A stretch of DNA of 64,000 bases from positions 67,828,001-67,892,000 of the forward strand of contig OZ287754.1 in the NCBI GenBank assembly GCA_965649765.1. Reading direction: 5' to 3'. Below are positions 5,289-64,000 of the stretch, piece after piece; position 1 is the first letter of the stretch, and each line of letters begins with the position of its first letter. This stretch comes from Bispira polyomma. Taxonomy: Eukaryota. A program made the position numbers and the translations under genes. The notes beneath the pieces are model-generated. The model was not told the origin of the DNA. It saw only the letters and a program-made list of their open reading frames with translations, and ran no database searches.

Positions 5289-5329
5289 TTGGTCAGATTC
5301 AAGGGTGGAAGAAATTTATTCGTAAGTAG

Positions 5330-5390
5330 CAGAGCAGCTTCAAACCACGACTGCATAGGTGGAAGGCAAGTGTGTTACCACTGGGGCCCT
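5330..5390 (-). mobile_element. tRNA-derived SINE head fragment
   Basis: Reverse complement 'gggccccagtggtaacacacttgccttccacc...ggtttgaagc' has A/B-box-like motifs; resembles 40195-40235. Confidence 0.5.
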
Positions 5391-5459
5391 AAACTTGTCT
5401 ACAAATCACGAAAATACACACCTGTGTACATATGTAGGAGGCAAATGTCTTAATTACAA

Positions 5460-8095: not shown

Positions 8096-9465
8096 ATTGT
8101 TTTAGGGTTTAGTGACGTAAACACAAAAAGACAACGGCGATAAAGTATGATGCTCTACGAATGCCCACTTCTACTCTGTGTCACAAATATGATGGCTTCA
8201 AAAGTATACTTTAGTGAGGTTTTTAACTATTTTTATATGTCCAGACAAATTAAAAGGTTAATACTTTGCTATAAAACTATAAAAATACCCATATAATGAT
8301 TCTTGTATTGTGACGTCACACAATTTGAAATCACGCAGAGAGCCCTTTCTATTGTGACATAATACGAGTATTGATCCAGCATATATCAGTACAAAATATA
8401 TACTACACAACTTTATAAAACATGTATATTATTTCTAGTGATTTACATTTTTCAATATGTTTCCTTATTTTATAAAAACGAAGAATATAAAGCATCTTTC
8501 TGTTTGAATAGTGTAACTTTAATGTTTTTCTAAAATAAGCCCACTTTTTGTGCTTTTATTGAAAAAGGAATTCATTCAAAATAATGCTCATGTTTCTTTT
8601 TTTCTAGTCATGCAGAATACTTCAGTATTGATTCTTTCTTGGATCAATGATTCTGCAGTTGCTCTTTGGAAGATGCCTAGCATCAATAAAGCACTTTAAA
8701 AATTCATAATAACAATAATATTACAATCAAGGACGTCAGATTATATATATACATGTAGATATATATATATATATAGGTTTTTACCAAGAAATTGGATGTC
8801 TATTTATGAGACTTAAATATAGTGATTTTCTGTTTTTCTGTTCATAAGATTTACTGTCTGGATCTGGCTTAAGAGTCAAGTTAAAGTCTATAAAGTATGG
8901 CTAGAAACATATTTTATACTTATTTTTTTGACAGGATGATTGTCTTATTTCGGGGCATGCACACTTATTAATTTGTGTATCATATTCGGCCCTATGAATT
9001 GCTAAGAAATGGTCTGCGACCTATATGCCGCTATATTAAACTCTTTTAGGGGGAATACCTGTGATGGAAAATTATCTATTGTCTGAAAAACTGCCTGGGA
9101 TTGAGTTGAACACACCAATCACCTTTCTAACCCACTCTCAGCCTATATGCTATATACCAAACATGCTGTCTGATCCTTATACATCAGTAAACATCTAACT
9201 AGCGAAACGATTAGTTATGGATATTGTAATGACTAAAATTGAAAAATAATGTAATAAAAAGTAATGGCTCACATAAAGACATACTTGCAACATCATTATA
9301 TAAGGACTAGATGAATTATCACCCTTAAGCCTTTCACATTTGTCATGCTCTAATAAAACGTATAATTGTCATTATTAATCATTCATTGTATGTACATTAC
9401 AGTGAATTTGATTATTGTCATGGAATATGGCTGTGTTCACACTGGGTGCTGCATATCTCTGACAG

Positions 9466-12476: not shown

Positions 12477-14180
12477 GGGCTGGTTTCACCAAACCTCTTT
12501 AATTTTCTTCTCCTTTAACTACAGGAAGGGGTTTTTTCTTCCTTTGGTAAGGCCTCCCTTAAATCCGGTTTCACTAAGCCTCCTTTAATTCTACTTACCA
12601 AAGGCTTTTCCCTAAAACTAAAGGAGGGAGATTATCACTGTTATCCAATGAAAATCCTTGTTTCATTGGTAAACAAACGAAAATTATTAGCATTTGTATG
12701 TTGTCAAAATTATGTCAAAACATAAGGGAATTCTTTGGTAATATAACACATGAAATTTCGAAGTAGCAAAAATTATTCACTGACACTTTTACTTTACAGT
12801 GGCCACAAACATATCCAACTGAAAGTTCCATGTGCTAAATTATCCAAAAAAACAACATATGTATCACTGAAGAAATAGTCTGAAATGCATCTGTATACAA
12901 TTGCATAGATTCGACAGGTAAATTTGTATCATTCGTTTGATTATTTTACAACACATGATACAAATTTTCCACAGAATTTTTTCGGTTTGTTTTAATTTGG
13001 TTCTATTTTAAACATAAATATCCCAAGTATGTGTGTATCCAAGTGACAATACATATATTACCCCCCCTCATAAATACTGGTAGTTTGTAGTTTAAAAGAA
13101 AGAAAACATTCACAGAATATATTTTTATAACATTAACATTTAAAACACTATTTTAGTTAATATATATCATAATGTATTATGTCCTGACACTACAGTATAT
13201 ACAACAGAAATAAATAAACAGGTTTTAATTACAAAAACAAGATTACATAATGGCACATGTTTGACCTAAATAGTAAAGCACTTAAATTTTGCTGTGGCTT
13301 GTAACATCTACAGTATTTATAGAATTGGCCATAATAATGCATTTTATCTCACTTTTATTATAAAATTTTAAAACTACCGGTATTTTAATGTTATATGTAA
13401 TCATTGTCATTATTGAAAAGTATACTTATTTTGTAATTCTAATATTGAAATGGCAAATATTATAATGGGGAGAATTTTGTTTGCTTCACTAGACATGGCA
13501 CATGTTTAACCTGATTATTTCAATACTGAGAAAATCCCAGGGAGTGTGGTTGTGTTTCCAAATAAATGCTTAATTAACTTATAGCAGGGAAGACTTAAAT
13601 ATTTAAAGACACTGACTTTGTAAACTTAAATAAAATCCCTATATTTAGAGATTCTAAGTGAGTTTAAGTATAAGCTTATTTTAGAATAGGTATTTAATTT
13701 TGATTTGAGCATAAGCTTAAATTTAGGTTTTATAACCTACATATAGGGATATTGTTTGAGTTTAAGACTTTTTTATGAATATTTAGAATGATCTGTTTAA
13801 GTACTACATGAAAAACTAAAGTTATGGTTGGTACAATGTACAGTATGAATAATTAGGATAAAGATAATTACTGTCAGATAAAAACTTCGCTAACTATTTC
13901 TTTCTCAGATGTTTGCATCACACTCTAATTAATTAACAGGCAAAAAACAGCTGAAAATGTATGCACATATTAAGAAAACACTTGATTATTTATGTAAAGG
14001 AGGAAACTAAGGTACCTTCTGAGTTTCCTTAAGATTTAAGAAATAAACCTTAAATTTCAAGGTCGCCTTTAATTTAAGGAGGTTTGGTGAAACACACCTT
14101 ACTACAGGAAGGAGGAAATCTGAGGAAAACCTTAGATTTAAGGAGCTCCTTTATTAAAGGAGGTTTGGTGAAACTGGCCC
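12477..14180. mobile_element. PIF/Harbinger-type MITE, 1704 bp
   Basis: TIRs 'gggctggtttcaccaaacctc' / 'gaggtttggtgaaactggccc'; 3-bp CTG TSD at 12474-12476 and 14181-14183; subterminal repeats of the TIR motif. Confidence 0.88.
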
Positions 14181-14846
14181 CTGTACCGCTAATGTAACTT
14201 GCCTCTCAGTCAATAATTACTTTCTGGCTGAGGAGATATGGGAAAATATGATTTATTTATTGATTCAAATTCGTACACAAAGTACACATTGTTACAATAT
14301 ATATATTTGAAAAAAGTATACCATTAACGAACTAAAGAAAATGATGAACTGAGTACAGATTTTATAAGATAAACATGTAAATATATACAAATAACACTTA
14401 TTTTACACTACTTCATACTAAAAAAATCTAGCATGAATAGGATCTCATTACTGAGATCAACATGGTCTTGTATAGAAATTGTGTGGTTACCCTAACCCTT
14501 CTCGACTTGTCTGCCACACTAACACAGTCAATCACTATGAATTATTGGTTTTGTCTATCAAACTCAGTCCTTTGATAGATTGAATATTATCTAGTAAATC
14601 GTAATCAAGTTATCTGGGTCAGCAGATCCAAGTCATCTTCCATTCGGTGTCCCACAGGGTTCTGTATGACCATGGGTTCCTTCTTGAGCTTGATTTGTGA
14701 CATCATCAATACAGGAAATTGCACCCAGAAAGGTGTTACCAATACAACATCCAAATGTCAGTTCTCTAATTTGCATAGCATAACATACATACACATTACA
14801 AGCAAAATTGGAAAAAAATACTCTTTAACGTCTTTGATTTTTTTAG

Positions 14847-16700
14847 AAATCGTCTGGTACAACTCAGAACACCAACCTATTCATTAAAGAGTCAGACATC
14901 CAACAGGAAATTGAGAAAAGGTGTGAAGAAATTGAATGGCATGTCAAAAGGATTCAGAGTTTACAACACATGCAACAAAATCCAGGTAATACATTGCAAA
15001 TTTAGTGCCTATATTCACCTGAATAATAATATAAGACTGTCAGCAATGATGAAAAGGAATATTGAAAGGTGTCCATGTCTCTCTTAATGATTAATCATTT
15101 GGAAACTGATACAGTAGAAAATCTAGTTTTTTCCTAGCACTAGGTAAAGTTTGGACAGCTAAAAGCTTCACAAAATATAGGTGTTTTAGTATGAAACAAT
15201 AGGAATAAATTCCAAAACTTAAATTAAAAAAATTTAAAATTTAAACAATATATAGAGGTTTGAGTAACAGTATCTGTATTGAGTTTAAAATGTGACAGTT
15301 AATTGATAACCAATCATCCTTTAGGGGATTAATATCCACGGCAACTGATTCTGAGATACTACCAACCAAAACACATTTTTTTGTAAATATATAGCCAATA
15401 AACAACAAACAGGGTCATTAATCATGTCGATCCAGTGAAATAATACTGTGTTTTTAAGTTTTTGTTTCTTCTAAAGATAATGTTGATGAATACAAACTTC
15501 CTGAGGTAGCATGTTACAATGTTAATTGGGGTATAGTTTATCAATTTAGGCCAAAAAAATGGGTCAACCTAAGAATAACTGAAACATAAATAATTGTTGC
15601 TGCATATAATAGACATATGTCCCATATTACATACTAAATATGTAGAAAAATATAATGAATGGAACTTGTCCAACAAGATGTTCGTGCCCAGTAAGGCTGC
15701 AAACCTGGTTTGCTTTCAAACAGTATCGTCATTTGGTTTATTCATTTTAGTTAAATATATATTTATAAAATTCCATAGACGGCCGAGTTGCCCATGAAGC
15801 TCATACGTCACATTGACTCAGTCAGCTTCAATTAATACTTTTGCATACATTTTTCTGTATTCAGACAATACAGATCAGTTATGTAGATCATCTCGTGAAC
15901 AGCCCATAACAAACCCAGAGGAAGAACAAGAAAGTAATACATCAAAAGACGATCACTCATTGGAGAATTTCTACAGATTGTTTTTGTCAGACTTGAAAAG
16001 GTATCACTTCACTTTATCATGTTATTCCTCCCTTATCTTTAGTTTGCCCTTTGATGTAGTTGCTAGGGCTACAGTGGCCTAGCTGTAACAATTGCAATTG
16101 CTTCATAATCACTGGCCTCTCACAAATGTGGCAGTTATCATAGTTTGGTGGTTTACAGTGTTTCTTCCAACATTTAATTTTGGCATTAAGATATAAAGTT
16201 GAAGGAGATTAATTTTATTAGATAACATTAGTATCACCATATGGGCATTCTGCTATTTACGGATTTATACATTACTGCCCATGCATGACAGCTAATAGTC
16301 TGACTGTTGGATTGTGAACATAATGACTATATATGTTACTCATCAGTAGTACAACCACTTTCGTTCACCAGGCACAGCCTGATATTGTTTCCATTCTGAA
16401 AAGGTTGCCGCCATCTTAGAAAATATGGAAAGACTCTGTGAATTGAGAAGCAGATATAAATTAACATAATAATATTCTACAAATGTTAAGATGTTGCTAC
16501 TGATAATATTACATTTTGATATGGTCTATATACCTAAAGTTGAATCTATATTAAACTGCCGGATGAAGGATATGAAAGAGAACCAGCTGGACATTTTCAC
16601 CACACACTAATAAAACCTGAATACAAATTATTTTAGATTTGCAAATTTCATGAACATTTCCGACATTACTTCCGCCTTGAGAGTGATCAAAGAAGATTAA
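14847..16700 (+). CDS. Three phase-compatible terminal exons of an unidentified gene (14847-14985, 15865-16000, 16637-16700)
   Basis: Canonical AG/GT with pyrimidine tracts; phases 0-1, 1-2, 2-stop; spliced frame open: KSSGTTQ...EIEKRCEEIEWHVKRIQSLQ...ENFYRLFLSDLKRFANFMNISDITSALRVIKED*. Confidence 0.55.
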
Positions 16701-22709: not shown

Positions 22710-24445
22710 TTCAATACATGATTTACAAGTCTGTTATTGCTATGCCCTGTAAATCCCAGTATAATGTTTTCGGACTTTAGTATGTTGTGTGTATCGAAAG
22801 CAGACTTTAGCTTTTCTGCTATTAAGTACCAAAAGGAATTAATCTTCGAGTAGTACTAAAACAAATGTTCTATGGTTTCAACTTCACTATTACAGAAATA
22901 ACAGCTGTCTGTATCTTTAATTTGCAAAGCTTCAAATACCTATTCGTTGTAAGAATTCTTCGAATAACTTTATACTGAAAATCCCTCGTTCTAGTTTCCA
23001 TCGTGCATTTGTAATTTGTATTATAAAAACACATGCTTTGAGGGTCAAATGTTTCATTAAGGACAGTGGACCATTTTAAAATTTGTGACCTTTCCACTTT
23101 AATGTTTCCAAAGATTTTCCAATGTACACTGTTGCAAACTTTTGACATTTTTAATACATTTTCTAAAAATTTATGTTTAACATGACCTAACTTTGTAATA
23201 CAACTTAATTTCCATTCTTTTGGGTTTGAATGCATAAGGCTTTTGATGTTGACAAAATTGATATTTATGTTAAATTTGGTACAAAAATCATTGTAACCCA
23301 AAAAGCCTTCATTTTTATGCATCAGGTCATTAATATAGCTTAGACCTTTACTTTGAAAATACTGTTGCTTAAAAATTAAGTTTTTGTTTTGAATAAAATT
23401 TGTGTTCCACAAGGAAAAGCATCTACAATCTAAATCTGTTTAAAAATTTAGTTTCCATTCAAACCAATATTTCGTAACTTCATACCAGAATTTGTTTCCA
23501 GTTAAATCCAATTTTTTTGTTAATTGATGCTGTGTCTAATTCTCAGTAGTTTTTTTTTTTTTTTTGTCATACTACCAATAGTGTGTTCAAATAAGTGTTG
23601 CCATGTGCCATCAGACTCTATTAATCTCTTTATCCATGATAGTTTTAATGCACAATGAAAACCCTAACATTAGGTAATTTTAACCCACCTTGTAACACTG
23701 TTTTCTTTAGTTGCGATGCTGGTATGCAGATATTATCCTTCCAAATAAAATTTTTAATAATTTTTTCTGAGATTTGAAATATATCTTCGGAGGGAGCTGG
23801 AGATCAGTCAGTGGGTAATCTAATTTGGGAAGAACAAGTGTTTTGATAACAGTGACTTTTCCAATGAGGGATAAATGATATTTCTTATACTGAAATAAAA
23901 GTTTTTCAATCTTAGTGATAGCATCTTAAAATTAATTTCAACCATATTATTCAAATGCTATCAAACTTAATTCTAAAAAGATTAAAATGTTCTGTCCACG
24001 CTAAGTTATAATCCCTACTTATTGTTGTTGAAGCTGTGTTATTACCAAGACACATACATTGTGTTTTGTCAACATTTATTTTTAGATCTGAGCACAGATA
24101 AAATCTCTGAAAAGTTTGAATAGCTTCCTGTAATGAGGATGCACTTTTGTCAAACAGAAAGAAGGTGTCATCTGCATAGTGACCTATCTTGCTTATTATA
24201 TTGCCCACCTTATCACCTTTAATGGAGTTGTTTTGCTTAATGTCTAAAGAGAGTGGTTCTATAGCTAGTATGAACAAATAAGGGCTAAGCGGATCCCCTT
24301 GTCGACATCTTCTATTTAGATTAAAAAATTTAGAGAAGAAGCCATTATGAACAACACAGCTACTGGAATTTTTATAGAGAAGGTTATACCATTTTATGAA
24401 ATGTTGTCCAAACTTATATGCATACAGAACTTTTCTGATGTAATT
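22540..24445 (-). mobile_element. L1/Tx1-clade LINE ORF2, RT to C-terminus, in FReD intron 4
   Basis: CRQGDPLSPYLFILAIEPL, YADDT, LKINVDKT; C-terminal RDFQYKVIRRILTTN; stops and frameshifts present. Confidence 0.9.
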
Positions 24446-26699
24446 GCTGGACAATCTTTGATATTTGTAATATAAAATAGCATGTATGTAAAATAGTCCA
24501 GTGGATATGATGAATACTATACTCTTCATAACCACTAAATCTTTAATATGTTTTTAGGAAATTCACTGAGTAGTCATAATGGGCATCATTTCTCAACCTT
24601 TGACAATGACAATGACAATAACACAGTTAGCTGTGCTAAGAGTTATAAAGGTTTGTAGATAAATAACTTTACAGATATGTACCACAAAGACTATTGATAT
24701 ATCATCCTTTAAGGTGCTGATTCTAGAAAAGGTACAGTCCTCCAGCTTAGACTTGGTCATTCTCAAGGAAACTGAATAATTTAAGATGCTTCTCAAACAA
24801 AGGATTCAGTTCCATTGTTGTGAATTGGTCTTCTCTGTTCGGTCAAAAGAAGATTATTATAAATTCAAAGGTTACCGCAGATGTTACCTGATGTTAAATA
24901 AGTTTATGACATTACTGAATATGTTAAGCACTTTTACATGTGGTGACTGCTTGGTCAGATACACCTGTTGTATTGATGAAATATTTCTACCAGGAGATTT
25001 CCCTATTCGAATCACTGCTAATGTGTGTTTTCTTAGCTAATGATTTATTTTACACTTGTTCATGTAATTCTATATACCTTCGCTGAAACAGAATTTTTGT
25101 CCCTGTGGATCCATACATACATAGGTATTAGGATTTCAGTCTTTAACTCTTTTAATCAATTTTACATATAAATCAGCATATTCCAAATTTTAGTATAGTC
25201 AATTGTTTAACTTTAAACTATCTGCACCACACCAGTATGTGTTTGTGTATTACTTTTATTTTAATGTCCATTATTTATGTTAACTGTAAAGTAAATGTCA
25301 GAAATTTTACGAAAGAATTTAATTACCCCTTTATCATGAAAATGTCCGATGTAATGCCGCTAAAAGATTGATTGTTGCAATCAAATGACTGGTTTGGGAA
25401 AACATACCAGTATCCAAACCATGCTGTTTTTGTAACAATATTTAGGATATGACAATCTAGTTCTAATTCACCCTTTATTATAACTGACCAAGAAATTTTC
25501 TGATCAACTAAACATCCGTCCAAAAATAAAAGTCTGAATCTGAACATGGTTTACAGAAGGGTTTATATGTAAATATTTTGCAGTTTCTAGAAATGTATTA
25601 TGTTAATATAAATGCTGATGAAATTGTTATGGAAGCATTGTAACAAGGTAACATAATATTACTCTCTGATATTGATATGACTATAGAAATTTACATAATT
25701 TTTAAAGGAGGTTGGTGGTATCATTCCTGTCATGATGTCAACATTAATGGACTGTACCTTAAAGGGCCATACACATCCTATGCGAATGGAGTCAACTGGT
25801 ACACATATAAAGGATTTCACTACTCTCTGAAGTTTAGTGAGATGAAAATTAGACCAGCTGCCTAGGAATGTTAAACTTAAACTGGTCTGAGAAACATTCA
25901 CACATACCGTTGAATTGTATTGTATTGTGTAAATTACATTTATACTGAGAATGTTTATTTACTTTTATCTCGTATTCAAGGCACAATTTACATTTTCTTG
26001 ACTGCACATGCTACAGCCAAACAGTACCAAATCATTTACCTGACTCAAGTGGCATGCATTAAAGAATGTCCCAAAGGGTTATTCATCGACCATTTTAAGT
26101 GATTATCTATCTGGCTATAACTGATCACCCAGGCTTGGATAAAACCGAGGTCATGTCTGTTTCTAAATGACTGTGTTACACATTAGGCCACAGAGATAGA
26201 TGCATTTTAATATGAACAAAATTTACTCTTTCACATTACATTTACCTTAACATGACAAACAATATTAACCAACAAGTCACACATGTGAAAATTCTGTCAT
26301 CAAAAACATTCTGATCAAAAGACACAGTGAATGAATTGCACCAACAAGAAGAACACGCAGAAGAGTATATAAGCAAGATGATGCATTGTCAAAAACTGTA
26401 AAAGCAAATATTCCTTGGTCCAAATTATATGTGTATCTGTTTGGTTGTTCTTGTATAATTCTGATGACAAAAATATTATCTGAAATGTCTAAAAACATAA
26501 CTTATGTTACTTGCTTATTTGTATTTTTTCTATAACAATTTTTGTTCGAAGTTCAATTAAAAAAAAAGAAAACATCTATTCTAGTAGAAAATAGTATAGC
26601 TAGTAGATCTGAATAAAATAGTTTTATCCCACTGTGTTTATCATTCGTGTCTTGTATAATTTTACCTGAGGTAATGGGACTGTAATCAAAATTGCAACT

Positions 26700-28311
26700 A
26701 TTAGCTCACTTACTGAGGGACATGTACCTGATGGTTTTAAACAGCTGTGGTTACTCCTCTTATTAAGAAGGCTTCTCTTCCAGTTGATGACCTAAAGAAT
26801 TATCGCCCTGTATCTGGTCTTAGTTTCATATCAAAACTGGTTGAACGTGTGGTTGCTAGGCAACTGTTAGATCACATCTTTGTCCACAACTTAGACAACC
26901 CATACCAGTCTGCATATAAAACAGGTCATTTGACTGAGACAGCTCTTCTGTTCATACAAAATGAAGTTCACCTATCTTTATCAAGAGGGGAACCTACTGC
27001 CCTGGTATTGCTTGACCTCTCTGCTGCCTTTGACACCATTGATCATTCCACGCTTCTCAGTTGTCTTCAGACTGGGTTTGGAGTTAGAGGCTCTGTTCTT
27101 AAATGGTTCACTTCCTACTTAACTGATCGTTATCAGTCGATAAAATTTGGCTCTACTTTGTCCAATCTTTGTAAACTCTTGTTTGGTGTTCCTCAAGGTT
27201 CTGTTTTGGGCCCTCTGTTGTTCTCATTATGCACTGCCCCTCTCAGATTGGTTATTGGCAAATACACAGGAATTAAGTTTCATTTTTATGCAGATGATAC
27301 CCAAATTTATGTGCACCTATTCCATAAGAACACATATACTGCCTTTGAACAGTTGAACAGGTGCCTTGACGATGTGAAAGAGTGGATGTCAACTGGTGAA
27401 CTCAAACTTAATCCCGACAAGACTGAGTTCATAATCATTGGCTCAAAAGAACAGAAGGATAAGTTGAAAGCATTGTTTCCAGTTGACATCCTGGGTAGCC
27501 CTTTCAGTCCAGCTGATTCTGTCAAGAACCTGGGTGTATGGTTTGACTGACTTTTCTTTCTCTAAACATGTTCAGAGTGTCTGCAAAAGCTGTTTTGTGC
27601 AACTCCGGGACTTTAGATGTGTCAGACGGTTTCTCACTTATGATGCTTCTATACTTGTGGCCAATGCTTTTGTCAGTAGTAGACTGGATTACTGCAATTC
27701 GCTTTTCAGGAGTCTCTCAAAGTTTAATTTACACAAATTACAATGCATTCAAAATATTGCAGCTAGAATTGTGTCAAACACCAGTCGATACACCAATATA
27801 ACTCCTGTTCTTAAGAAATTGCATTGGCTCCCTGTTGAACAGCGTTCAGTGTGTAAGACAGCTACACTTATTTATAAGTTTCTCCACACTGGGTTTCCAA
27901 AGTATTTTGCCCCATATCTTTCCACTTATAGTAGTTCCTACAATAACAGACGTAGTCGGAGTGGTAGTAATTTTCTTATTGTTCCGAAGTTCCACCCATC
28001 TACTCAAAAGTCGGTTAAACAGTTTGGTCACAGCTTTGCTTTTGATGCTCCCATTGTTTGGAATGCTCTTCCTGATGTGATTCGTGCTTCCCCCTCACTA
28101 ACCTGTTTTAGAAAGAAGCTTAAAACCCATTTGTACACGAAAGCATATCCACCTCAGTCTCAATCATCCCCCGGCATGCTCTATGTTGCTGACCCTTTTT
28201 CTGTCCCTTGATTTTGGAAATTGGATAAATGTCTTTTGTCCTGGTACGCCTTAGAGTCCCCTTTGTTAAGGGGAGATTAAGCACAATAAAAGTCTAATTA
28301 CAATTACAATT
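26700..28311 (+). mobile_element. 5'-truncated L2-clade LINE, best-preserved copy of its family here
   Basis: ORFs 26747-27550 and 27483-28211: NYRPVSGLSFISKLVER, LLDLSAAFDTIDH, GVPQGSVLGPLLF, YADDTQ, SRLDYCNS, LHWLPV; frameshift near 27548; (ttacaa)n tail. Confidence 0.95.
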
Positions 28312-38280: not shown

Positions 38281-41200
38281 ATGGAACGACTAATGACAAC
38301 AGCATCTTCCGGTTCAGTGCAGGATTTACAGAAGTATTTACAGGAATTAGGTCAACCGAGGTCACGTGACCATTTGAACAATAAATACGGGACAGAAAAG
38401 GGCAGCATCATTCACATGGTAATTAATAGGCATTTGCAGCAGAAAGCCGACATTGCCTTTGGTAAACTTGAACTATTGCTGAAACATGGGGCCAGCTTAG
38501 AACAAAGGGATATATACGGCAACAACGCACTGATGCACAGTGCAAAACTGGGTAAGCACACATTAACCGATTGCATGATTCAAAAGAGCAAGGTACCAAT
38601 GTTAATGGAAAGTAATCACTATGGCATGAACTTACTGCATATTGCTTCACTGCGCGGGCACTGGCATGTCCTTGACCTAGTTCTGCAGAAAGTAGGTCAG
38701 GAGAAGTTGCAGAGTTTGCTGAATCAGCAAACCTCCAAACCATTTACCAGATACATCCCTTCTGTAGGCAAGACCCTGAGTATCAAAGCATGGACGCCTC
38801 TGCATTTCGCTGCCATTTGCTGCCATCTGGATTGCCTCAAGTGGCTAGTAAAGCATGGTGCCGACAAGAAAATGGGCAATGCCGAGAGACTGACACCTGG
38901 AGAGATGTTACAAAGTTTCAACATTGTGGAGGAATCAACAGCCATTGCAAAGCAGTGCTATGGGTATATAGTGGCCAGAAAGAAGAATACGAAAGCTGAA
39001 GAGGAGTATCTAAGCACAAAACAACCAGGTAATGCTGCTGAGAGTTCCAAGACCGAGTTTTCTGTCTCTGTTTCATGGCTTTTGTAGTCACCAACGACAC
39101 AGAGGTTACCATTTGCAAAACTTGACAAACCTGACAGGTCGCCCATCACATGAAAGGTGTTATCTTTCTATTTATTCTGTGGTTGTATATTAATTAATCT
39201 AATAGCCATACACATTATTATTACCTATCAACCTACATATTTACTTAAACCGATTTATTTAGTTTTGATGTTAGTAACCATTCCGTCCCTCGTGGTGTGT
39301 ACCATCAGTAAAAGTCAAAGCATCATCAAGGACAAAAAAATCGTTCTGGGAAAAGTTCCATACACTGTTTGCGAATATAGAAGATATTTAGTTCTTCAGT
39401 ACACCCCATGTGAATGGATAAAGTATTTCATATCCCATAAACAAAAGTGTTCATTTTACAAACTAGAAGTGTTGATACGAAGTAAGTTTCTGCCAGGGCC
39501 AAGATAATTCAAAATAGATGAACAATATTTTATCATGTGACTAAATCTCTCATAGAAGTTTTAAAACCAGCATGATCAAATGTGATCCAAAAAACAAATG
39601 TGCTCAGGAATTAATCTAATCTAACTTTTATAGCTCTTATCTCTGTGCTAGCAGATGCTAAAGTGCATGAGATAGGAATTCATTTTGACAATTCCATATA
39701 GCCATTGGGTACACAAGGGTCGTAACCATGGAGACGCTGGAAAAAAGTAAGAAGGATAAGGTGGAAAACCTTTACTAAATAGATATGTTTTGAGCTTTTT
39801 CCTTACACAGGCAAGTGAGGAGGCAGTGTAAATATCATGAGCAGACTAGTCTACAGCTTATGAGCATCATATCAGAAAGCATTGACGATATACAGTGTTT
39901 CAGCTAAATTAATAAATACCATTGTAGGATATGCTTATCACAGACAAACAGAAGTGTTGATCATTTTATCTGCAGTATTTATATAATGAATCAGGCACGT
40001 GTTTTCTTTGAGAAAGGTAAGTCCTTTAAAATACCCTTGTTCAACATTAAAAAGGCATGTTCACATGTTGCCCAAGGATAATATCCAACAGTAACCTATA
40101 TGCCATTACCTGGAGTCAAAGTGAGGAACTGCTGATTATCGAACAAACACCTTAAATCAACGGTAACCTTAGAAAGCACCTTAAACTGATGACCTCAGAG
40201 GTGGGAGGCAAGTGTGTTAACTACTATGCCACCGAGACACCTGGCGTGTATGCAGGAAGTTAGTGGTATAATTGTTGAAGGTATGTGGTTTTCACAGCAA
40301 GAAACCATGATCATCTGTCCTGTTCTGATTTTTTTGTGCATTGCATTGCCTTTTAACTGATACAAGACAAAATGTATTTGCAGTGACGTTATATCCAAAC
40401 TACACCTAACCACTCAGCCAAGGAATGGTACTAAACTAATTATAATTTTTTATTTCAGCACAAGTTGTGAACACAAGGGCAGACACTAAATCCACTATCA
40501 GCAGGAATCAGTCCGTGGAGAAAAACCAGCTCCATAGCGGGAAATCACCAGTGACCAAGTCCAAAATCATAGTTGATTTAGACGAGTATTTGTCGAACTA
40601 TGGAATGCAGTTCAAGGACATCGCCAATAAGCTGATTGAGAGGGAAATTTCAAATGTATCTCAGTCAGCTACAGGTAGTAGTATCACAAAATCTCAATCC
40701 TTAAAATGTCTTACCAAATCAGACCTTCCACTATCATTGACGGTGTAAACTTATAAAGAGTCTTGGTTCTACTGGGATTCAATTCGAGGACCTGACAGGA
40801 TCTTGAGATTAATAGTCTAGTATACTAACAGTTGAGCTAAAGGGGCAACTATGTAAGCAACAGTCTTTAATGTGCTGATATACACGAATATGACAATGGT
40901 TATAGTTTCGAAATAATGCACCTTTTTCCATTCCGACTGTATTGATATGGTAATCTAGTTTTACATAGTATAGAGTTAGGGCAGTGTTATACCAAAAAAC
41001 CAAACGTTTCAATTACAATATAACATTATTATATTTTGTACAGTATCTGAAAAGGTGCCTAATGATCAGGAACCAAAGTATTTACCAAATAAAGCAGAGA
41101 CTGGAAAACCAACATTCGAGAGGTTTGCTACAACATCAACAGATCGAGGCACAGTTCGTGAAATACAAGACAAGGACCTGGCCTTTGTTAGAAATGTATT

Positions 41201-53989: not shown

Positions 53990-56622
53990 CTAATATTCTT
54001 CCTCCATCTGTACTGTAACTTCTGCAGGTGTGCTGGCCACCTGCAATAAATTGTGTAACACAAGTGTTGCTTTGACCACAACTTTTGACCTTTCTGGTGC
54101 AATGGCAATTTTTGTGTGGTAAATGCGCCATCTTGCAGCCAAAATTTCAAATGTGCACTCAATGATTCTGCGAGCTCTAGAGAGGCGGTAATTGAACGCT
54201 CTTTCTGCTCTGCCACTTGATTTGCCTAGGTATGGTTTTAGCATGTGGTAGGTAAGTGGGAAAGCCTCATCTGCAACTATGGTATATGGCAATCCCCCAA
54301 ATTCAGGTACTTCTGGTAAGGCCGTGTCAGGTGGAATTCTTAGTCTGTTTGATGTCAGTCCTTTTCCAAGATTTGATTCAGCAAATCTTCCTCCATCACT
54401 GTTCCTGCCAAATTCCCCAATATCTACGTAAATGAATTTCAAATTGGCATCTGCCACGGCCATCAACACCATTGGCATGGTGCCTTTGTAGTTAAAGTAA
54501 AGGGAACCACTGTTTCTTGGAGCTTTTATAACTACATGTTTGCCATCCAATGCGCCAATGCAATTTGGAAACTGCCATTTATATTTGAAAGTTTCTGCAA
54601 TTAACCTTCAGTCATCTTCATTTTGTGGCATTTTGATGTACAAATTGCTAATAATATTCCATATTGCCTTGCATACCTCTGGTATTAAAGTAGATAGGGT
54701 TGAAACTCCAATGCGGTAGCTAAAGGCCAGTGATTTATATGATTCTCCAGTTGCAAGGTACCTGTAAAAGCTCAAACAAACTAGGAAGAATAAAAATATA
54801 TTGATACTACCTCTGTATGTACTATATTAAAAGGTCCAAATGGTAAAATAAGTATATATTGTGTATTTATTTCTTAGAGATTCCATTGAAAGTAATGGCG
54901 AGGCAAACAACACAATATTAAGTCAAATTAATGCCACACAGCCTTGTGATGGCACTACACCCAAAAGGATACTCTCAAAGAGGAAAACAAGTACTCCGAG
55001 TGAAGGGAAGGCCCCAAAAATACAAAATAAAGCAGGTGCATCAAAGCAGGTGATGGACGAAGCGTTTGCAGATCTATTACAGCTCCAAAAAGAGAGGGGA
55101 CACAAAATTGATCAAGCTTTGTGTGAAGAAAAGAGCGAAACAGAACTTCTGTTCCTTAGTTATGCCAAGAGAATGGACAAGTTGCCCCCAAGGAAAGCCT
55201 CACATTTGAAATTCAAAATTTCAGAACTTTTTTACAAGGCAGAAACGGAAGTGCTCGAAATACAACAGATGGGCAAGAACTATGTCGGGGCATTCAATTT
55301 TCAGATGCCTCAAACAGTACAATTGCCATTTTCAGGCACTACTGCTCTTTTCTCTACAGCAAGCAACCTTCCATTTACTGAAAGCAACAATCTGCAAGCT
55401 CCAACCAGTAACATGGCCATTTCTTCTGGAACAAATCTCTCAGTATTCCCCAGCTTTGGTGACTAAAGCATATCTGTTTCTCCCACACACCCCACAAGTA
55501 TAAGTTTAGGTAAGACAGGATCTTTGTCCATCAATATCATAACATCCTGACAATAAAAAACTTGGTTACCACAAGTCGAATATCCTATATCCATAGTATT
55601 TGTTACCTAATATTGAAGTAATATTTTGAAGTACTGGACTAACAAAATTGGTTCTTGAAAGGTGTAATTCAACTTTGCACCGACCTGATCTGCTAATTGG
55701 AAGAGTCATACAAAAAACAATTCAAAGAAATCATTCTGTAAAGATTTATCTGGATTTTTTTAGTGTTTTTTTTTTTTTCATTTGTGCCTGTTTAATTATT
55801 TTTTAACATATTCTTTGCAATAAAATAAAGGTTCAATTAAAGTAATTTTCAAACATAAAAACCATTTAGAAGGCTGCAATCATACATTTTATTATTAATA
55901 TAAAAACTATTTATTGGTATCCATTATTATTTGTCCAAAATTGCACTTTATTTCTTGGTAGATTTTTAAAACACTATATTTAGAACAGCATAAACCAAGA
56001 CCTGCTCATATGTATGAATGTATAGTGAGATTGTAAAGTAAAACAGGTAAAAGTTTAATTCCTACTGAAGATAGATTTTGTGTGTTCTTTGAAGAATTTA
56101 TTTGTTGATAGGCTCAATTACCCTGAACTACAAAGGCTGACAGCTCTCCTGTACATGTGTATGCAGTATTTTAACAGAAGCTACATTGAAGTAAAAGGCT
56201 CAGTGCATCGGTAAATCTTGTGACTTTAGTCATAACCATAAGTGTTTGGAGATTATTCGGTGTTTTATTACTTGTTTTATAGTACATCAACCACGTAGTT
56301 GCTAGATGAAATGATCACCGGTGATATGAATTGTTTACTGTATTTGTTATATACCACAACATTTTATACAAAAAAAAAATGAAATGCAGTTAATATTTAC
56401 CTAAAATATGCTTTGAATTGAACTTCATCCAGTCTGAGCTCACTTACAAGATGATGGTAGGCTCCAAATTGCTTTTTTTCTTTAATAATATCGTGTACCC
56501 AGAATCTATGTTGCTTGGACTGCTTTTTCTTATGTTTGCATTTAATATAAAGCATCATCAATGCAAGCCTTCCGTTAATTTCCTCATTAGCACGTAATAA
56601 GGCCTTGCTTTTTTACCGCCAT
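53990..56622 (-). pseudogene. Harbinger (HARBI1-like) DDE transposase; exons ~56401-56622 and 53990-54761
   Basis: Exon 1 RFWVHDIIKEKKQFGAYHHLVSELRLDEVQFKAYFR; last exon YLATGESY, FPNCIGALDGKHV, GRNSDGG, VADEAFPL, FNYRLSRARRIIECTF; premature TGA at 54608-54610. Confidence 0.9.
54878..55466 (+). CDS. Terminal exon of Harbinger DNA-binding (MADF/Myb-BESS type) gene
   Basis: Acceptor 'ttcttag|'; basic NLS-like SKRK; BESS-like ELLFLSYAKRMDKLPPRKASHLKFKISELFYKAE. Confidence 0.7.
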
Positions 56623-58124: not shown

Positions 58125-58923
58125 TGTGACGAGCGCCGATTGTAGCCCCTTTTAGAATTACCGAAATTTGCGTCATTTTCGGGAGCTCCGAGTTTTAGTA
58201 CCCGCCGGCCATGCTTTTAGATGTAAACAAACGTACGGGAATTAGCGAAACAGAACGAGTAGGTGGTGTGGTGTTCCAATGAGGATAGGGGGTGGTTCTG
58301 GAGTTAATTAGGTGATCAAGTCATGCTGGATCTGGGCTCTCTTTCATATTAGTGACAAAGGGAATAGGATGTGTTTTTGGTGGTTCTGGATTTTAAAATA
58401 TCTATAGCTTGATAAAGCTAGGGTTGATACTTATGATGTCTTAGTAAGTGTTATTAACATAGTTGATGGGGATAGGGGGATTGGGGACAGTTTTCATTAT
58501 ATTTAAACATCATTATAACAAATTTTTGACCAAATAGTAAGCATGGGGATAAAGCGTCAGTTTGATTTGGCCTATCATGGTGATCAGTGGCTCCCCTATT
58601 CATTTCCATTACTGTTATTTTATAATATTGTTGTGAAGTCGTCGTCCTCCTAGCTGTGGATTTGCCGCGAATGAGACTGGTTGTAAAGTCGTCGTTCGCC
58701 TAGCCGTGAAACTGCCGCGAACAAGACCAGAAGTGATATCCCGAGAGCGACAGTTATCGCAGACATTTTGAATAGACAGTTACATATACTGGGACAACAA
58801 ATAAACATTGTTGACCTGTGACATACAGTGGCACAGACTTGTGTGTAGTTTGTGGGACATACCGTGGCACGAACACTGTGGATTATAGCTGTCTTAAGGA
58901 GACAGTCACCACAGACAGTTACA
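58125..58923 (+). repeat. Probable 5' LTR of Gypsy element 3
   Basis: Starts TGTGAC, candidate end GTTACA, AATAAA near 58800, higher GC/CpG, directly upstream of gag; second LTR not in the window, so boundaries are unverified. Confidence 0.45.
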
Positions 58924-59049
58924 GGTAGGCAGCAATTCTCAATATTGGTACCAGTTGTTTGTGAAAGTACCCACGTGAGTACAGTACCCGTATAGGCTGT
59001 CATTTTTTGCAATTGCAAGTATTAAAAATCAAAATGAAACAAACTTGAC

Positions 59050-59244
59050 ATGTCCGAAGCTGGGTGGAACATCGATACAGCGACTATGGCAGAGTTGATG
59101 GAGATTAACGATGTTGGTTCACGTAGAGCTGAAATGATTCTTGAACATAGAGCAAAGTTCATGGGATTCATGTCCCTGGAAGATTTTCAGACAGTGGAGC
59201 TCCCAGAGCATGTCAAGGATATGCAAGATTTCAAAGGGGTATGA
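59050..59244 (+). CDS. ComEA-like helix-hairpin-helix module at the Gag N-terminus
   Basis: NIDTATMAELMEINDVGSRRAEMILEHRAKFMGFMSLEDF matches the HHH_3 consensus INxAxxxELxxLpGIGxxxAxxIxxYRxxxGxFxSxEDL. Confidence 0.75.
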   Translation: MSEAGWNIDTATMAELMEINDVGSRRAEMILEHRAKFMGFMSLEDFQTVELPEHVKDMQDFKGV

Positions 59245-59424
59245 AATCTGTGAAAGGAGAGATCAAGGATCTGAAAGAACAAGGGTGCCAGGTCTGGAAT
59301 TCCTCAAGGGAGATGTGGGCCAGTTGAGCAAAGAGGTCCAAGAAGTCATGGAGGATGTCGGTGTGTGGAAGCTTAAAGTTGCAGAGATTGAAAAACGGGT
59401 ACAGGAACAGGAAAAGAATATATC

Positions 59425-59765
59425 TTCATTTCCTGTTGAATCAAAGGCAGGTGCTTCAGAAGGGGTTAATACTCTTTTTGTTGAGAAATCATCAAAGGAA
59501 AAGCAGAGAGATAGTATGTTTTCATTTCCTGCTGGGGCAACAAAACCTGCCGCGGAAGGAGTTAATCCTCTTTAAGGGCGAAACCATTGCAAGGGAAACC
59601 GGTAGGACAAATGTTTAAATTTCCAGTCGGGGCAACTAAATATGCTTCAGAGGGAGTGAATTCATTTAGAGGTGCCAAACCATTGCAGGAAAAACAGGGA
59701 GAAGGAGTGTTTGCATTTCCTGCTGGAGCAACTGAACATGCTTCAAAGGGAGTTAATCCTCTTTT
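59425..59765 (+). repeat. Four coding tandem repeats (~93-99 bp) in Gag
   Basis: FPVESKAGASEGVNT / FPAGATKPAAEGVNP / FPVGATKYASEGVNS / FPAGATEHASKGVNP. Confidence 0.85.
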
Positions 59766-61549
59766 GAAGTATACTCTGGGATGAGCCATTACTTTTTCTG
59801 AGGAGAAATCTTTGCCAAAAGAAGAGCTGTTGAAGGTGAAACAGGCGTAGAGGAATCCTATCGAAACTTTAATGAAATCAATCGGCAAAAGAACATCGCA
59901 CAACTTCATCGTCAGAATCAGGAGTTGGTAAATGAGTATCAAGTTTTCCATAACAGGAGTAGATTGGAATGGGGAGGTTAAAATAGCAAAGATCAGGGGG
60001 TTACCAAAATGAAACAACAGTTTGATGTGGGCTACCCATTGCCAGTACAGTATCCTGACGACAAGGATTTGGACTGGACCGGTCTTGATCTTAATCTTTC
60101 ACGAGTCGTAGGGGGATTCCATATCATCACAGTTAGTGGGGCCCCAGTCTGGGCATGCAGTAAAAGTAGTTTCAGGTGAGCCTGTAAGATCAAGTGAGAA
60201 GCCTGTTGAGGAAAAAGCACCTGAGAGTTCAATAATTCCCAAGGATCCTGAAGACAGTGATATCAACCGCATTGTGACCTGCATTGAGAATAAAACAGAT
60301 TCCCGAAAATATACCGGTGGAGGCCAATCAGGTCATAACAGAAATATCACTGGTAATGAGAGCAGGAAGACAGCCAGACATTGGAAGTTGCCATCGAAAC
60401 CAACTCCTAAGTATAATCTGGATAGTTCTTGTGATGGGTCTTTACAATTTTCTCCCTCAGAAGGTGAATCTATTGCAGCTGAGCCAACCAGAGTGAGTAG
60501 AAGTTCCCGTATCACAAGTACTCCTGTATCAGTAAAGAACAAGATACAGATTCCTAAAATGTCTTTTTCTGGGGAATATTGGAGAGGTTTTATCGCGCAG
60601 TTTTAAGCTGTAGCTCACAAATTCAATTGGTCAGAAGTTAATAAGCTAGATACCTTTCCGATGGTTCTGAAGAAAGAAGCTTTGGAGTATTACAGCATAC
60701 TGCCCAAGGAGAAGTTGAAATGCTTTAGTTGGTTGAAAACAAAGTTTGAGCACAACTTCAACAAAGTTGAATCACCAACAACAGTCAGATGGGCATTATT
60801 CTCCACAGAGCAATGTGAAGATGAAACACAGTCAGAAGTATTTCACATGACTTCAGAAGATGATCCTGGACGTGTATCCAAATATTCGGGACCAAGGATT
60901 CAATAACTCTATGTTTGTGGAATTGTTTCTAAAAAGATGTAAGGACAGTTTTAGCAGTTTGTGACAAAAATCCACGGAATTTGGAGGAGGCTTATACTCT
61001 TGTCAAATCTGCATCTACCTATTGAAGGACTATATTGGGGAAGAAGGGTCGAGGCAGTGTGAACTTGAAATGCTATTGCAGACAAGTTCTGATAGTGACA
61101 GTTCAGGGACTTGTTCTACAAGCAATGCTAAAGTGAGAAACTTGCAGTTTAAGAACAAGTCGGGTACCAAACCATCAGTGCCACATACAGAGTGTCTGGA
61201 TACTGTGGAGATTGGTCTAAAGGAAATGAAGAATTCAATAGCTGAAGTGTTAGCCTTCAAATTCTTCAAATCCAAAAGGCATGGCCTGCTTTGAACGTGG
61301 CAACACATAACATTTAGTGAGGGATTGTCCCAAAAGAAGGAATTAATCTCCTTGCCGTAGCCCTAGCAGAAGTGATGACAAAAACTGGTGCAACAATACA
61401 AACACAGAGACCAATGTAGACCTTAGACCATCTTACCAGAAGGCGAATCAGGGGTTGAGATCTTATTCACCTCAGCCACAGCAGAGAAGTAGTTCTCCCA
61501 GAGGTGTGCAAAACAGTAATTCCACAAGTCCAAGAGGAAGATTTGATTC

Positions 61550-61586
61550 TTTAAATAAATAGATCAGGCCGGGTTGAATCACCTGA
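61550..61586 (+). promoter_or_regulatory. Candidate gag-pol -1 ribosomal frameshift signal
   Basis: T TTA AAT heptamer in gag phase just before TAG, then a 7 nt spacer and a tcagg...cctga stem. Confidence 0.55.
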
Positions 61587-63862
61587 CTTTATCTAATAAG
61601 ACTGTACAGAGAGCATATTAAGGATTATTCCAAGTTAACATCTGTGTTGTATAAACTGACAGGCTCCAAAGCTAGTTTCTTGTGGCAGAAAGAACATCAG
61701 TTAGCTTTTGAGACTATAAAGCAGCTGTTGACATCAGCTCCTTTATTAGCCTATCCAAATTCAGAAGATTCATTTGTACTATATACAGATACCTCTGAGT
61801 TTGCTATCGGAGCAGTATTGTCACAAGTGCAGGAGGGAGTGGAGAAAGTGATCTGTTATGGTAGTTATGTGTTATCTCCTGAGCAGAGGGGGTACTGCGT
61901 CACCAGGAAAGAGTTGTTGGCTGTTGTCAGATTTACCAGGCAATATAGACATTATCTGCTTGGCAGAAATTTTCTTGTCAGATCTGATCATAACAGTTTA
62001 ACATGGTTATTGCACTTCAAGCACATAGAAGGTCAGTTACCTCATTGGTTGGAGGAGTTAAATCAATTCAGTATGACCGTGATCCATCGACCAGGGGTAA
62101 ATATTGCAGCGGAGCACATAAACAGTGGTCCAGATTCTGTGAGGATGTTGATGATGTAGTGCCTTTAACAGTCAAGTCTATAACAGCAAAGGTATCGTTG
62201 AAAGATCTGTTCCTTGTTCCTATCTGATTGTTCTCTGGGAACGATCAGTTGGTTCCGGGAAAGAGTTAGAACAGAAGGAGTTATTTTTATGCAGTCTTGA
62301 AGGTAATCATTTTTATGTCTGTAGAAAGCAGTTGGTGTACCAGGACGGATTGTTGTTTTACAGGTGGAGAGAAGAATTTGGAGACAGACTGTTATTAATG
62401 GTTCCAGAAAAACTGAAACAGGAAGTTATTTCTTACAATCATGATTTACCATTTACTGGACATATGGGGGTGACGAAAACCACAATTAGGGTTAAGCAAT
62501 CATTTATGTCGTATGGGATCACCAAGGATATTGAAATATATGTGAAATCTTGTCCAGTATATAACAAGAACAAAAGTCTAACATAGAGGCCAAAGCAGCT
62601 TTAGGATGGTACCATGCTGGATTTCCATTGGACAGGGTACATCTGGATATTTTAGGACCATTTACTGAGTGCAAATGGTAATCAGTATGTTTTAATGTTA
62701 GTGGATCAGTTATCCAAGTGGCTTGAGTGTTATCCTTTGCCGAATCAAACAGCTGAGAGTGTTGCAAAATGTGTTGTTGATGGTATTATCTCAAGATTCG
62801 GGTGTCCAGGGGAGGAATTTTGACAGGAAATTATTTACTTCTGTCTGTGAACTACTGCAAATATCTAAAACTAGAACTACTCTATATCATCCTTGCTCTA
62901 ATGGTCAGGTAAAGAGATATAATTGGACGCTACTGCAATTGATTTGGTATTTTCTGCAGGATGGTCATCAGTCATGGGATCAGTATTTACAGCAATAAGC
63001 TGGGGCAATCCGGCCTACTGTGAATCGACAGACAGGGTTTACACCGAAACTAATGATGCTTGGTCGTGAAGTTCTGGCGCCCGTTGATTTAATGCTGGGA
63101 GAATTTGACAGGCTACAGGAGTCAACTCCAGCTGAATATGTGCATAAATTACAAACTATTCTGCAAAAAGTGCATATGTTGGCTAGGCAAAAGTTGAAAT
63201 TAACTCAGGAAAGACAGAAACGGGATTATGACTTGCGTTTGAAGGTGAACACTTACGAACCAGGTGATGTGGTTTATCAGTTGGACTCAGCTAAAAAGAT
63301 TGAACAAATTAGTAAGCTACAACAGATTTGGAAGGGACCATTCCTCGGTGTTATCTCCAATCTTATTCAGGGTGGTCAATCCTAAGAAAACCTTTGTAAT
63401 ACACCATGACAGGTTAAAACCTTGTCGGGATAGGGTCATACCTCTGTGGTTAAGCCGAAAAAGAAGCAAACTGCTAGAAAATGGAAATCCTGATACAGAA
63501 TCCGGTGAGGATATGAATAATCTAAATATTGATTGGCTGTACTCAAATGAAACTCACAGTGATACTGGGCACAATTCACAACTACTGGAGAATAGTGAAC
63601 CGTCTGTACCTCTTACCTGAGAAACAACTAATTCGGAAGTAACAACCTCGCCCGTGCTACCACCTCCTGCATCTGAAGATTTATCTTGAGCTACTAGGAC
63701 AGGAAGGGAGACAAGTAGACCAAATTATCTGTCTTAGTTTACTACTTAAGATAGCTAAAGTTGGTTTGTTATCTTGCATGAACAGTCAAGGTTTGTTTAC
63801 GGAACTTACTAACTTTGGAGCCTGTCCCTATGAATAGTCAATAATGTTTTTTATTTCTTTAG

Positions 63863-64000
63863 ATGCAGAGACATTGTAGCTATCAACGTGAAAAATCCAG
63901 AGGTGGTAGTCATCCGGGGAGTCGTCCTCAGGATTCCTCACCTGAAAGCCAAGAGGTTTCTACTGACAGACAGGATGCAAGGAGTCGCCATTCGGATTCC
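63863..64000 (+). CDS. Start of an extra ORF downstream of Gypsy pol (partial)
   Basis: Strong acceptor 'ttttttatttctttag' immediately before ATG; 46 open codons to the window end (MQRHCSYQREKSRGGSHPGSRPQDSSPESQ...). Confidence 0.5.
   Translation, partial: MQRHCSYQREKSRGGSHPGSRPQDSSPESQEVSTDRQDARSRHSDS

Follow-up and report, generated by a model that had tools for sequence, protein, structure and literature searches.

The window analyzed here, a 64,000-nucleotide (nt) stretch of Bispira polyomma DNA, carries from about position 58628 to past its end a dead, internally deleted copy of a Ty3/Gypsy long terminal repeat (LTR) retrotransposon whose gag begins with a ComEA-like helix-hairpin-helix (HhH) domain. 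Comparison with relatives makes it nearly certain that this is the N-terminal domain of Gag in a distinct Ty3/Gypsy clade. In this clade Gag has the order HhH, linker, usually a coiled coil of about 400 amino acids (aa), linker, capsid and CCHC zinc knuckle, pol encodes protease, reverse transcriptase, RNase H and integrase, and a third open reading frame (ORF3) ends in a TatD-family nuclease. The HhH-headed Gag is the normal design of the clade and appears to be undescribed. Full-text literature searches, with subscription literature and Repbase outside their scope, turned up no account of a retroelement Gag with an HhH domain or of an LTR retrotransposon with a TatD gene. The "helix-hairpin-helix" of the Caenorhabditis elegans Cer1 CERV is no precedent, since the term there denotes something else, the hairpin of a leucine zipper.

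The helix-hairpin-helix domain at the head of Gag

The domain is encoded by a forward-strand open reading frame (ORF) of 64 codons (59050–59244) that starts with ATG, exactly as a first-pass annotation of the window had read it. The same annotation had recognized the HhH pattern of ComEA, EEPD1 and KIF22, and profile searches bear this out. The peptide matches Pfam HHH_3 (PF12836) with 33.3 bits (E 5e-8; gathering score 27 bits), residues 5–49 falling on profile positions 5–49 of 65, followed by weaker matches to other HhH families. Searched singly against PDB sequences, it matched EEPD1 (E 9e-6) and ComEA (E 1.7e-3), and also TEFM. A family profile built from seven sequences matched EEPD1 with E 1.3e-13, spanning both EEPD1 HhH units, ComEA with E 7e-12 (47 bits over profile positions 6–64, the whole (HhH)2 unit of ComEA 8dfk) and KIF22 with E 7e-4. 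Counted per domain, bacterial ComEA reaches 47 bits versus 30 and 21 bits for the two EEPD1 units. The HhH match in the window ORF is real and well beyond chance.

An exact look-up of the ORF sequence returned no record, and a HMMER search with the 64-aa peptide returned no retroelement relative among its best 150 matches. Each of the 150 matched over two or more stretches, whereas relatives with a single domain score too low to enter this list. Multi-HhH proteins made up most of the inspected matches, and those named by their source were bacterial; one inspected match (P0011) is an LRR-Roc-COR protein without an HhH match.

Structure prediction, which the first-pass annotation had proposed as a check, gave the same answer. 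AlphaFold2, run on the window peptide with the seven sequences, predicts four helices (residues 13–17, 24–36, 43–47 and 53–57) in an (HhH)2 pattern, with a predicted local distance difference test score (pLDDT) of 67, and the same domain reaches a pLDDT of about 80 inside a model of the full-length Gag of L002, one of the relatives described below. The best Foldseek match in the PDB is ComEA 8dss (probability 0.99, TMq 0.67, root-mean-square deviation 2.9, E 0.15), followed by Tex, TEFM, a ComEA-related protein and KIF22 (TMq 0.57); with about 60 residues, the domain is too short to give strong E-values. In a viral structure library the sole matches were giant-virus ComEA-like proteins, and no retroelement protein there matched the fold. 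By profile and predicted fold, then, the window domain is a ComEA-like (HhH)2 and at the domain level a member of the HHH_3 family, for which binding of double-stranded DNA (dsDNA) is predicted.

Across the seven aligned HhH sequences four positions never vary: L16, G23 (the glycine of the hairpin), I30 and R34. The signature shared with ComEA consists of a first hairpin h-G (G-I-G in L002 and L004), a basic helix with the conserved arginine, and then G-x-F/M-x-x-x-E-D-F. In the second motif the helices are present in the AlphaFold2 model (43–47 and 53–57), and the hairpin reads P-D/E-S/H without a glycine. Among four distinct lineages the HhH domain is 20–39% identical, the coil 12–23% and the capsid 30–61%. 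The HhH match could be argued to be fortuitous, given an ORF of just 64 aa in a decayed element and a best Foldseek E-value of 0.15. We rejected this on the Pfam score, which lies above the curated cut-off, and on the family-profile value of about 1e-13 against the PDB; the HhH domain is moreover conserved where the coil regions barely align, and this explanation has practically no weight left.

Because the window copy is dead, it cannot by itself show that the HhH domain belongs to Gag. Relatives were reached by a search that used the unbroken RNase H segment of the window and led to contigs of ENA assembly ERZ22147071; the only named matches in this search were Mytilus RNase H fragments (56–57% identical). 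Most relatives come from this one assembly, L006 comes from JGI metagenome 3300034972 and L023 from sediment metagenome ERZ935880. The window peptide aligns to the first codons of gag ORFs on the ERZ22147071 contigs and is homologous to about their first 57 residues (E 4e-14 for L001, the closest relative of the window copy, and E 2e-11 for L002). Five elements from the three independent assemblies have a single intact Gag ORF of 555–1091 aa in which the HhH domain falls inside the first 75 residues, in frame with capsid and CCHC knuckle (L002, 1030 aa; L004, 1091 aa; L005, 1051 aa; L006, 873 aa; L023, 555 aa). The single-ORF architecture that the first-pass annotation had put forward thus exists in nature. 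In L002, for example, one unbroken ORF of 1030 codons (5091–8183) encodes the HhH domain (aa 6–51), a long helical region or coiled coil, Retrotrans_gag (680–776; 28.4 bits, threshold 24.1) and zf-CCHC (896–911; 21.3 bits, threshold 20.8). Intact CCHC knuckles in the relatives score above the Pfam threshold. L023, on a contig of 55% G+C, has HhH, capsid and CCHC without a long coil, and its head passes Pfam HHH (PF00633) with 29 bits against a threshold of 24.

A search with the capsid-knuckle region of L002 yielded six more Gag clusters of 705–1091 aa, each with 1–104 near-identical members. Four of the six begin with the HhH domain; the other two are L007 and L008, in which the HhH domain lies in the same frame just upstream of the called ORF. 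L001, L003, L007 and L008 all keep the domain at the head of gag, with a single in-frame stop after it in L001, L007 and L008. A hidden Markov model (HMM) built from seven N-termini recovered the domain at the start of gag in L003, L007, L008 and L023, all outside the training set (E 8e-12 to 3e-8), and found none in the more distant Gypsy elements scanned. The position of the domain is identical in 10 of 10 loci. Among these natural relatives we looked for family copies without the segment, or with it in a frame other than that of gag, and none was found. A scan of IMG/VR with the Gag alignment returned nothing, and a scan of JGI metagenomes yielded nothing beyond fragments and HhH-less gags of more distant Gypsy elements. 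The outgroup Gypsy element L010, whose pol is 35% identical, has no HhH domain, which fits capture by one Gypsy lineage, as the first-pass annotation had proposed.

These relatives also bear on whether the HhH ORF is part of Gag at all, or instead a separate upstream ORF, a host exon or an insertion in the window copy only. In the window a stop closes the HhH ORF and gag resumes in another frame, and a stop after the HhH domain or after HhH and coil recurs in L001, L007 and L008. However, the stops in these three are in frame and the reading frame runs on into gag, and five intact ORFs from three independent datasets hold the HhH domain together with capsid and CCHC. On account of these intact ORFs a separate, non-Gag ORF was rejected, and we consider it very improbable. 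The in-frame stops (L001, 3009–3011; L007, 9911–9913; L008, 9989–9991) split the HhH domain, or HhH and coil, from the rest of gag with the frame unchanged, and the downstream gag ORFs of L007 and L008 form clusters of 18 and 61 members. Such a stop may mean that a master copy has decayed, or that readthrough is programmed.

The full-length model of L002 Gag has low overall confidence (predicted template modelling score 0.23), and we therefore use only its secondary structure. It places the HhH domain at residues 14–63, followed by a disordered linker (71–108), three helices (109–248, 256–394 and 413–506), a second disordered stretch (521–643) and a helical capsid (656–810; pLDDT up to 88) before the zinc knuckle. 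The short Gag of L023 has no such stalk, so the stalk is not obligatory.

The decayed copy in the window and its complete relatives

We analyzed the window element by three-frame translation and by comparison with L001. Its gag (about 59050–61560) is broken by many frameshifts and stops into pieces in different frames. The first-pass annotation had described a gag that continues across frameshifts into a coil, repeats, a capsid-like region and a CCHC knuckle; each of these pieces could be located between 59285 and 61328, the knuckle being broken. The features of the element are, in order:

58628–58944, + strand: probable 5′ LTR; end well supported, start probable
58946–58954, + strand: primer-binding site (PBS) TGGTACCAG; same 9-mer in relatives
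59050–59244, + strand, frame 1: gag piece 1, start codon and ComEA-like (HhH)2; Pfam match at nt 59062–59196
59285–59476, + strand, frame 2: gag coiled-coil segment 1 (coil 59285–59430); 45% identical to L001 gag aa 118–188
59428–59764, + strand, frames 2 then 1: four tandem units of about 32 aa, F-x-F-P-x-G-A-T...E-G-V-N-x-L; from direct repeat and translation
59802–60110, + strand, frame 3: coiled-coil segment 2 (coil 59802–59976) and DLDWTGLDL block; in-frame stop at 59977
60136–60560, + strand, frame 1: Ser/Pro/Glu-rich linker preceding the capsid; from translation
60560–61022, + strand, frames 1, 2 and 3: capsid (Retrotrans_gag-like); stops at 60604 and 60904
61287–61328, + strand, frame 3: CCHC zinc-knuckle remnant; second Cys is Arg, stop at 61308
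61559–61587, + strand: internal-deletion junction, protease and reverse transcriptase gone; from comparison with L001
61587–62159, + strand: RNase H of pol; PF17919 108.7 bits, PF17917 102.9 bits
62332–63746, + strand: integrase (zinc-binding, core and C-terminal parts); PF17921 58.4 bits, frameshifts and stops
63863–64000, + strand: start of an ORF running off the window; position and composition like ORF3 starts

The 3′ end of the element lies beyond the window, and of the LTRs and PBS the window shows just the end of the 5′ LTR together with the PBS; searches within the window found no 3′ LTR, no further copy of the element and no tRNA genes to which the PBS could be assigned. The succession of LTR end, one spacer base and PBS repeats the pattern of the five relatives with defined LTR pairs (L002, L003, L004, L005 and L008), in which TGGTACCAG stands one base past the 5′ LTR; the PBS is present in L001 and L007 too, and the sequence flanking it in the window aligns with L001. 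The LTR start at 58628 is only probable because the 3′ end lies past the window. It was placed at TGTTGTGAAG, directly after ATAT (58624–58627), the usual target duplication of the clade, and the LTRs of relatives begin with TGTGGTGA or TGAAGTGA. The window 5′ LTR contains a 48-nt tandem duplication (58630–58727). From PBS to start codon the distance is about 100 nt in the window (58946–59050) versus 1.2–2.7 kb in L001, L002, L004, L005 and L008; judged by these distances, the long leader has been lost by the window copy or its family.

Within gag, the stretch 59221–59285, where the frame switches, holds about 21 codons in the window versus 60 in L001. The unit of about 32 aa occurs four times in the window and about once in L001, an expansion within the coiled-coil region. 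The segment 59802–60110 matches L001 gag aa 202–268 and the next L001 ORF (tblastn), and its DLDWTGLDL block is also present in L002 gag. The linker at 60136–60560 corresponds to a stretch of L002 gag with a pLDDT below 50 in the full-length model. The window capsid is 67–92% identical to the L001 capsid ORF, which itself matches PF03732 with 30.6 bits. The L001 ORF for protease and reverse transcriptase (4628–6217) has no match in the window, and its neighbours on either side match up to 61559 and 61587. The window RNase H is 72–85% identical to those of L001, L002 and L003, and the integrase is 44–75% identical to the L001 integrase ORFs (tblastn). The Arg/Ser-rich ORF at 63863 looks like the beginnings of ORF3 in L001 (8813), L004 (17374) and L002 (12291), with an alignment that is not significant, and is tentatively, and probably, the N-terminus of the clade's ORF3.

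Five relatives have paired LTRs:

L004, 8026–8346 and 20527–20847: 100% identity
L008, 6016–6422 and 19410–19816: 99.75% identity
L005, 8208–8409 and 20440–20641: 99.5% identity
L002, 3321–3590 and 15537–15806: 97.8% identity
L003, 3824–4102 and 13189–13465: 95% identity

LTR identities of 99.5–100% in several elements mark these elements as young, and on this sequence evidence the young HhH-Gag elements are apparently active; in L004 and L005 gag, pol and ORF3 are all intact. The invariant HhH residues, the near-identical LTRs and clusters of 64–115 near-identical members are together a sign that the HhH domain has been kept by selection. Target-site duplications (in L002 at 3317–3320 and 15807–15810) are 4 bp long, ATAT in four of the five elements and GTAC in the fifth. 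Both are palindromes, which suggests a target preference.

The gags of the clade carry PF03732 and PF00098, and pol of L004 has the order aspartic protease, RVT_1, RNase H, Integrase_H2C2 and rve. No chromodomain was found in any pol examined; Integrase_p58_C was found, as was a PHD finger in L023. The element is Ty3/Gypsy by every structural criterion and is neither of the env-bearing nor of the chromodomain type. The PHD finger sits C-terminally on the integrase of L023, a distant lineage (pol fragment 2–2377, residues 747–791; 37 bits). PHD fingers are chromatin readers, and the clade thus experiments with chromatin readers.

Two of the relatives, L006 (ends 1–297 and 8286–8582) and L023 (RNase H at both ends), are circularly permuted contigs that read ORF3, LTR region and gag and have overlapping ends. 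They may represent tandem copies, one-LTR circles or repeat assembly. L006 has no pol between gag and the terminal repeat. In L007 a LINE-type reverse transcriptase (RVT_1 and zf-RVT; 13863–16226, − strand) lies in opposite orientation just past the protease and truncates the element.

A TatD-family nuclease in ORF3

Each of the seven HhH-Gag elements for which enough sequence is available has a third ORF, located between integrase and 3′ LTR and ending in TatD_DNase:

L004, 17374–20427: 1017 aa, TatD 126 bits
L005, 17374–19980: 868 aa, TatD 131 bits
L008, 17122–18963: 613 aa, TatD 89 bits
L002, 14158–15134: split
L003, 12738–13097: remnant
L006, 569–1879: 436 aa, TatD 125 bits
L023, 2399–4516: 705 aa, TatD 107 bits

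Alignment to YcfH shows that the metal-binding motifs (H-x-H, Glu, His, His and Asp) are all kept, and nuclease activity is predicted. ORF3 clusters have up to 115 members. The protein has an Arg/Ser-rich N-terminus, then a conserved middle block, then TatD. The middle block (alignment columns about 380–520; L004 residues about 375–510) contains Cys-x-Met-Lys-x-Cys...His-x3-His, which is zinc-finger-like and has no Pfam match. As to an envelope glycoprotein in ORF3, TatD_DNase is the sole Pfam match, signal peptides and transmembrane segments not having been specifically looked for. The outgroup L010 has neither HhH nor TatD; the strict co-occurrence of the two domains and their joint absence from the outgroup suggest a shared role in DNA handling. 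The TatD matches from Watersipora and Coilia, the only named ones, were rejected as clade members. These host genes are spliced and have neither gag nor pol nor HhH in their neighbourhood, so they give no host range for the clade.

Possible roles of the Gag head

In Ty3/Gypsy elements Gag usually consists of little more than capsid and nucleocapsid, and known chromatin targeting in this group relies on integrase chromodomains or host factors. HhH domains of the ComEA/KIF22 type bind the dsDNA backbone without sequence preference, and in retroviral and Ty3 lattices sequence N-terminal to the capsid faces outward, which would place the HhH heads on the outside of the particle. We prefer to read the HhH head of Gag as a chromatin tether, an interpretation that we consider plausible and slightly short of probable. 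The heads, on coiled-coil stalks at the outer particle surface, would act as many weak, non-specific dsDNA hooks, as the analogy to ComEA, EEPD1 and KIF22 suggests. By these hooks the particle or the pre-integration complex would be kept on host chromatin, such as that of mitotic chromosomes, and integrase would thereby reach its target. The effect would be comparable to the way KIF22 binds chromosomes with a stalk and an HhH end. The three long helices between HhH and capsid in the full-length L002 Gag model speak for a tether.

Several observations weigh against this interpretation. The G-h-G signature is present only in the first hairpin, the second (I-P-D-S-V-K) being degenerate, and most family members score below the HHH_3 threshold singly (15.5–22.5 bits; the window ORF lies above it). 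TEFM and Tex are among the matches, and some HHH_3-like domains work in RNA or protein contexts. L023 has the HhH domain without a long stalk, and its integrase PHD finger could already target chromatin.

The same observations bear on a role apart from dsDNA, with the HhH fold serving in contacts with RNA or a host protein or in Gag multimerization, as in TEFM or Tex. TEFM and Tex appear among both the sequence and the fold matches, and the degenerate second hairpin and the low single scores also speak for such a role. However, by far the strongest matches are the dsDNA binders ComEA and EEPD1, and the hairpin glycine and the basic helix following it are conserved. We rank this explanation third and regard it as unlikely.

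Ranked second, and somewhat less doubtful than a role apart from dsDNA, is a coat for the element's own cDNA. Here the HhH domain would bind the reverse-transcribed dsDNA after protease cleavage or opening of the capsid. Once bound, it would condense this DNA and protect it against autointegration, host sensors, nucleases and possibly the element's own TatD, and would be a built-in counterpart of BAF, a host HhH protein. The identity of the domain supports a coat as it does a tether, and the HhH domain always occurs alongside a TatD with intact catalytic motifs (7/7 elements, the outgroup having neither). Against a coat, the usual Gag topology puts the N-terminus outside the shell, where it is separated from the cDNA; a cDNA coat also offers little reason for the long coiled-coil stalk, and cleavage sites are not known.

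A broader and still more speculative proposal than the tether, which we hold as possible and on balance unlikely, treats the HhH head and the ORF3 TatD as two halves of one acquired DNA-handling system that defines a new three-ORF Ty3/Gypsy clade. With the same reservation, HhH would bind dsDNA at the particle surface, and the metal-dependent TatD nuclease with its zinc-finger-like domain would process or destroy DNA. It may trim or clear cDNA by-products, countering host DNA sensing, or may act on target chromatin. We know of no counterpart to such a nuclease step in known retroelements. Both captured functions are unusual, and the pairing of HhH with TatD is consistent; domain capture is common in retroelements, which tempers the surprise.

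ComEA shares with the Gag head its domain family by profile and its predicted fold. In ComEA, however, the HhH domain is C-terminal in a membrane-anchored DNA-uptake receptor, whereas in the clade it forms the N-terminus of a retrotransposon Gag. The whole ComEA protein also has an SLBB/oligomerization domain, whereas the clade Gags have no SLBB match and otherwise consist of coil, capsid and zinc knuckle; compared with ComEA-type hairpins the clade's second hairpin is degenerate, and DNA binding by the Gag head is a prediction. EEPD1, the best PDB sequence match, has tandem HhH units and an EEP nuclease domain, whereas the clade Gag has a single (HhH)2 unit and no Gag has an EEP domain. KIF22 (Kid) resembles the clade Gag in joining an HhH DNA-binding end to a long coiled coil, but has a kinesin motor, which Gag lacks, and the reverse domain order. 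No orthology of the Gag HhH with EEPD1 or KIF22 is implied, and the protein is not ComEA, EEPD1 or KIF22.

With canonical Ty3/Gypsy elements (Metaviridae) the clade shares TG..A LTR ends, 4-bp duplications, a tRNA-type PBS, a Gag with Retrotrans_gag and CCHC, and the order protease, reverse transcriptase, RNase H and integrase. In contrast to them, its Gag is two to three times as long as usual, starts with HhH and usually has the coil of about 400 aa, and the env position holds an ORF of 600–1000 aa ending in a TatD nuclease. The p12 protein of murine leukaemia virus (MLV), the chromatin-binding sequence of foamy-virus Gag and the integrase chromodomains of chromoviruses would resemble the Gag head in role only as we propose it by analogy. 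The MLV and foamy-virus tethers are short nucleosome-binding peptide motifs and chromodomains read histone marks, whereas the HhH head is, as far as its sequence indicates, a folded domain of the DNA-backbone-binding type and belongs to another family.

If the predicted DNA binding is true, a folded ComEA-type DNA-binding domain on Gag would be a different solution to reaching and holding host DNA, and the strict company of HhH and TatD suggests a wider DNA-handling repertoire in retroelements than has been catalogued. The HhH domain is small and easily expressed, which makes its DNA binding directly testable. For annotators, HhH and TatD provide two new marker domains for one Gypsy clade.

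The rest of the window is AT-rich (35% G+C), contains no N and is crowded with transposon remains. Elsewhere in it lie two remnants of non-LTR reverse transcriptases (long interspersed nuclear elements, LINEs), a fragment of a Harbinger-type DDE_Tnp_4 transposase and an ankyrin-repeat ORF; the coordinates listed together for these other features are:

26747–28211, + strand
23951–24535, − strand
53990–54550, − strand
38281–39087, + strand

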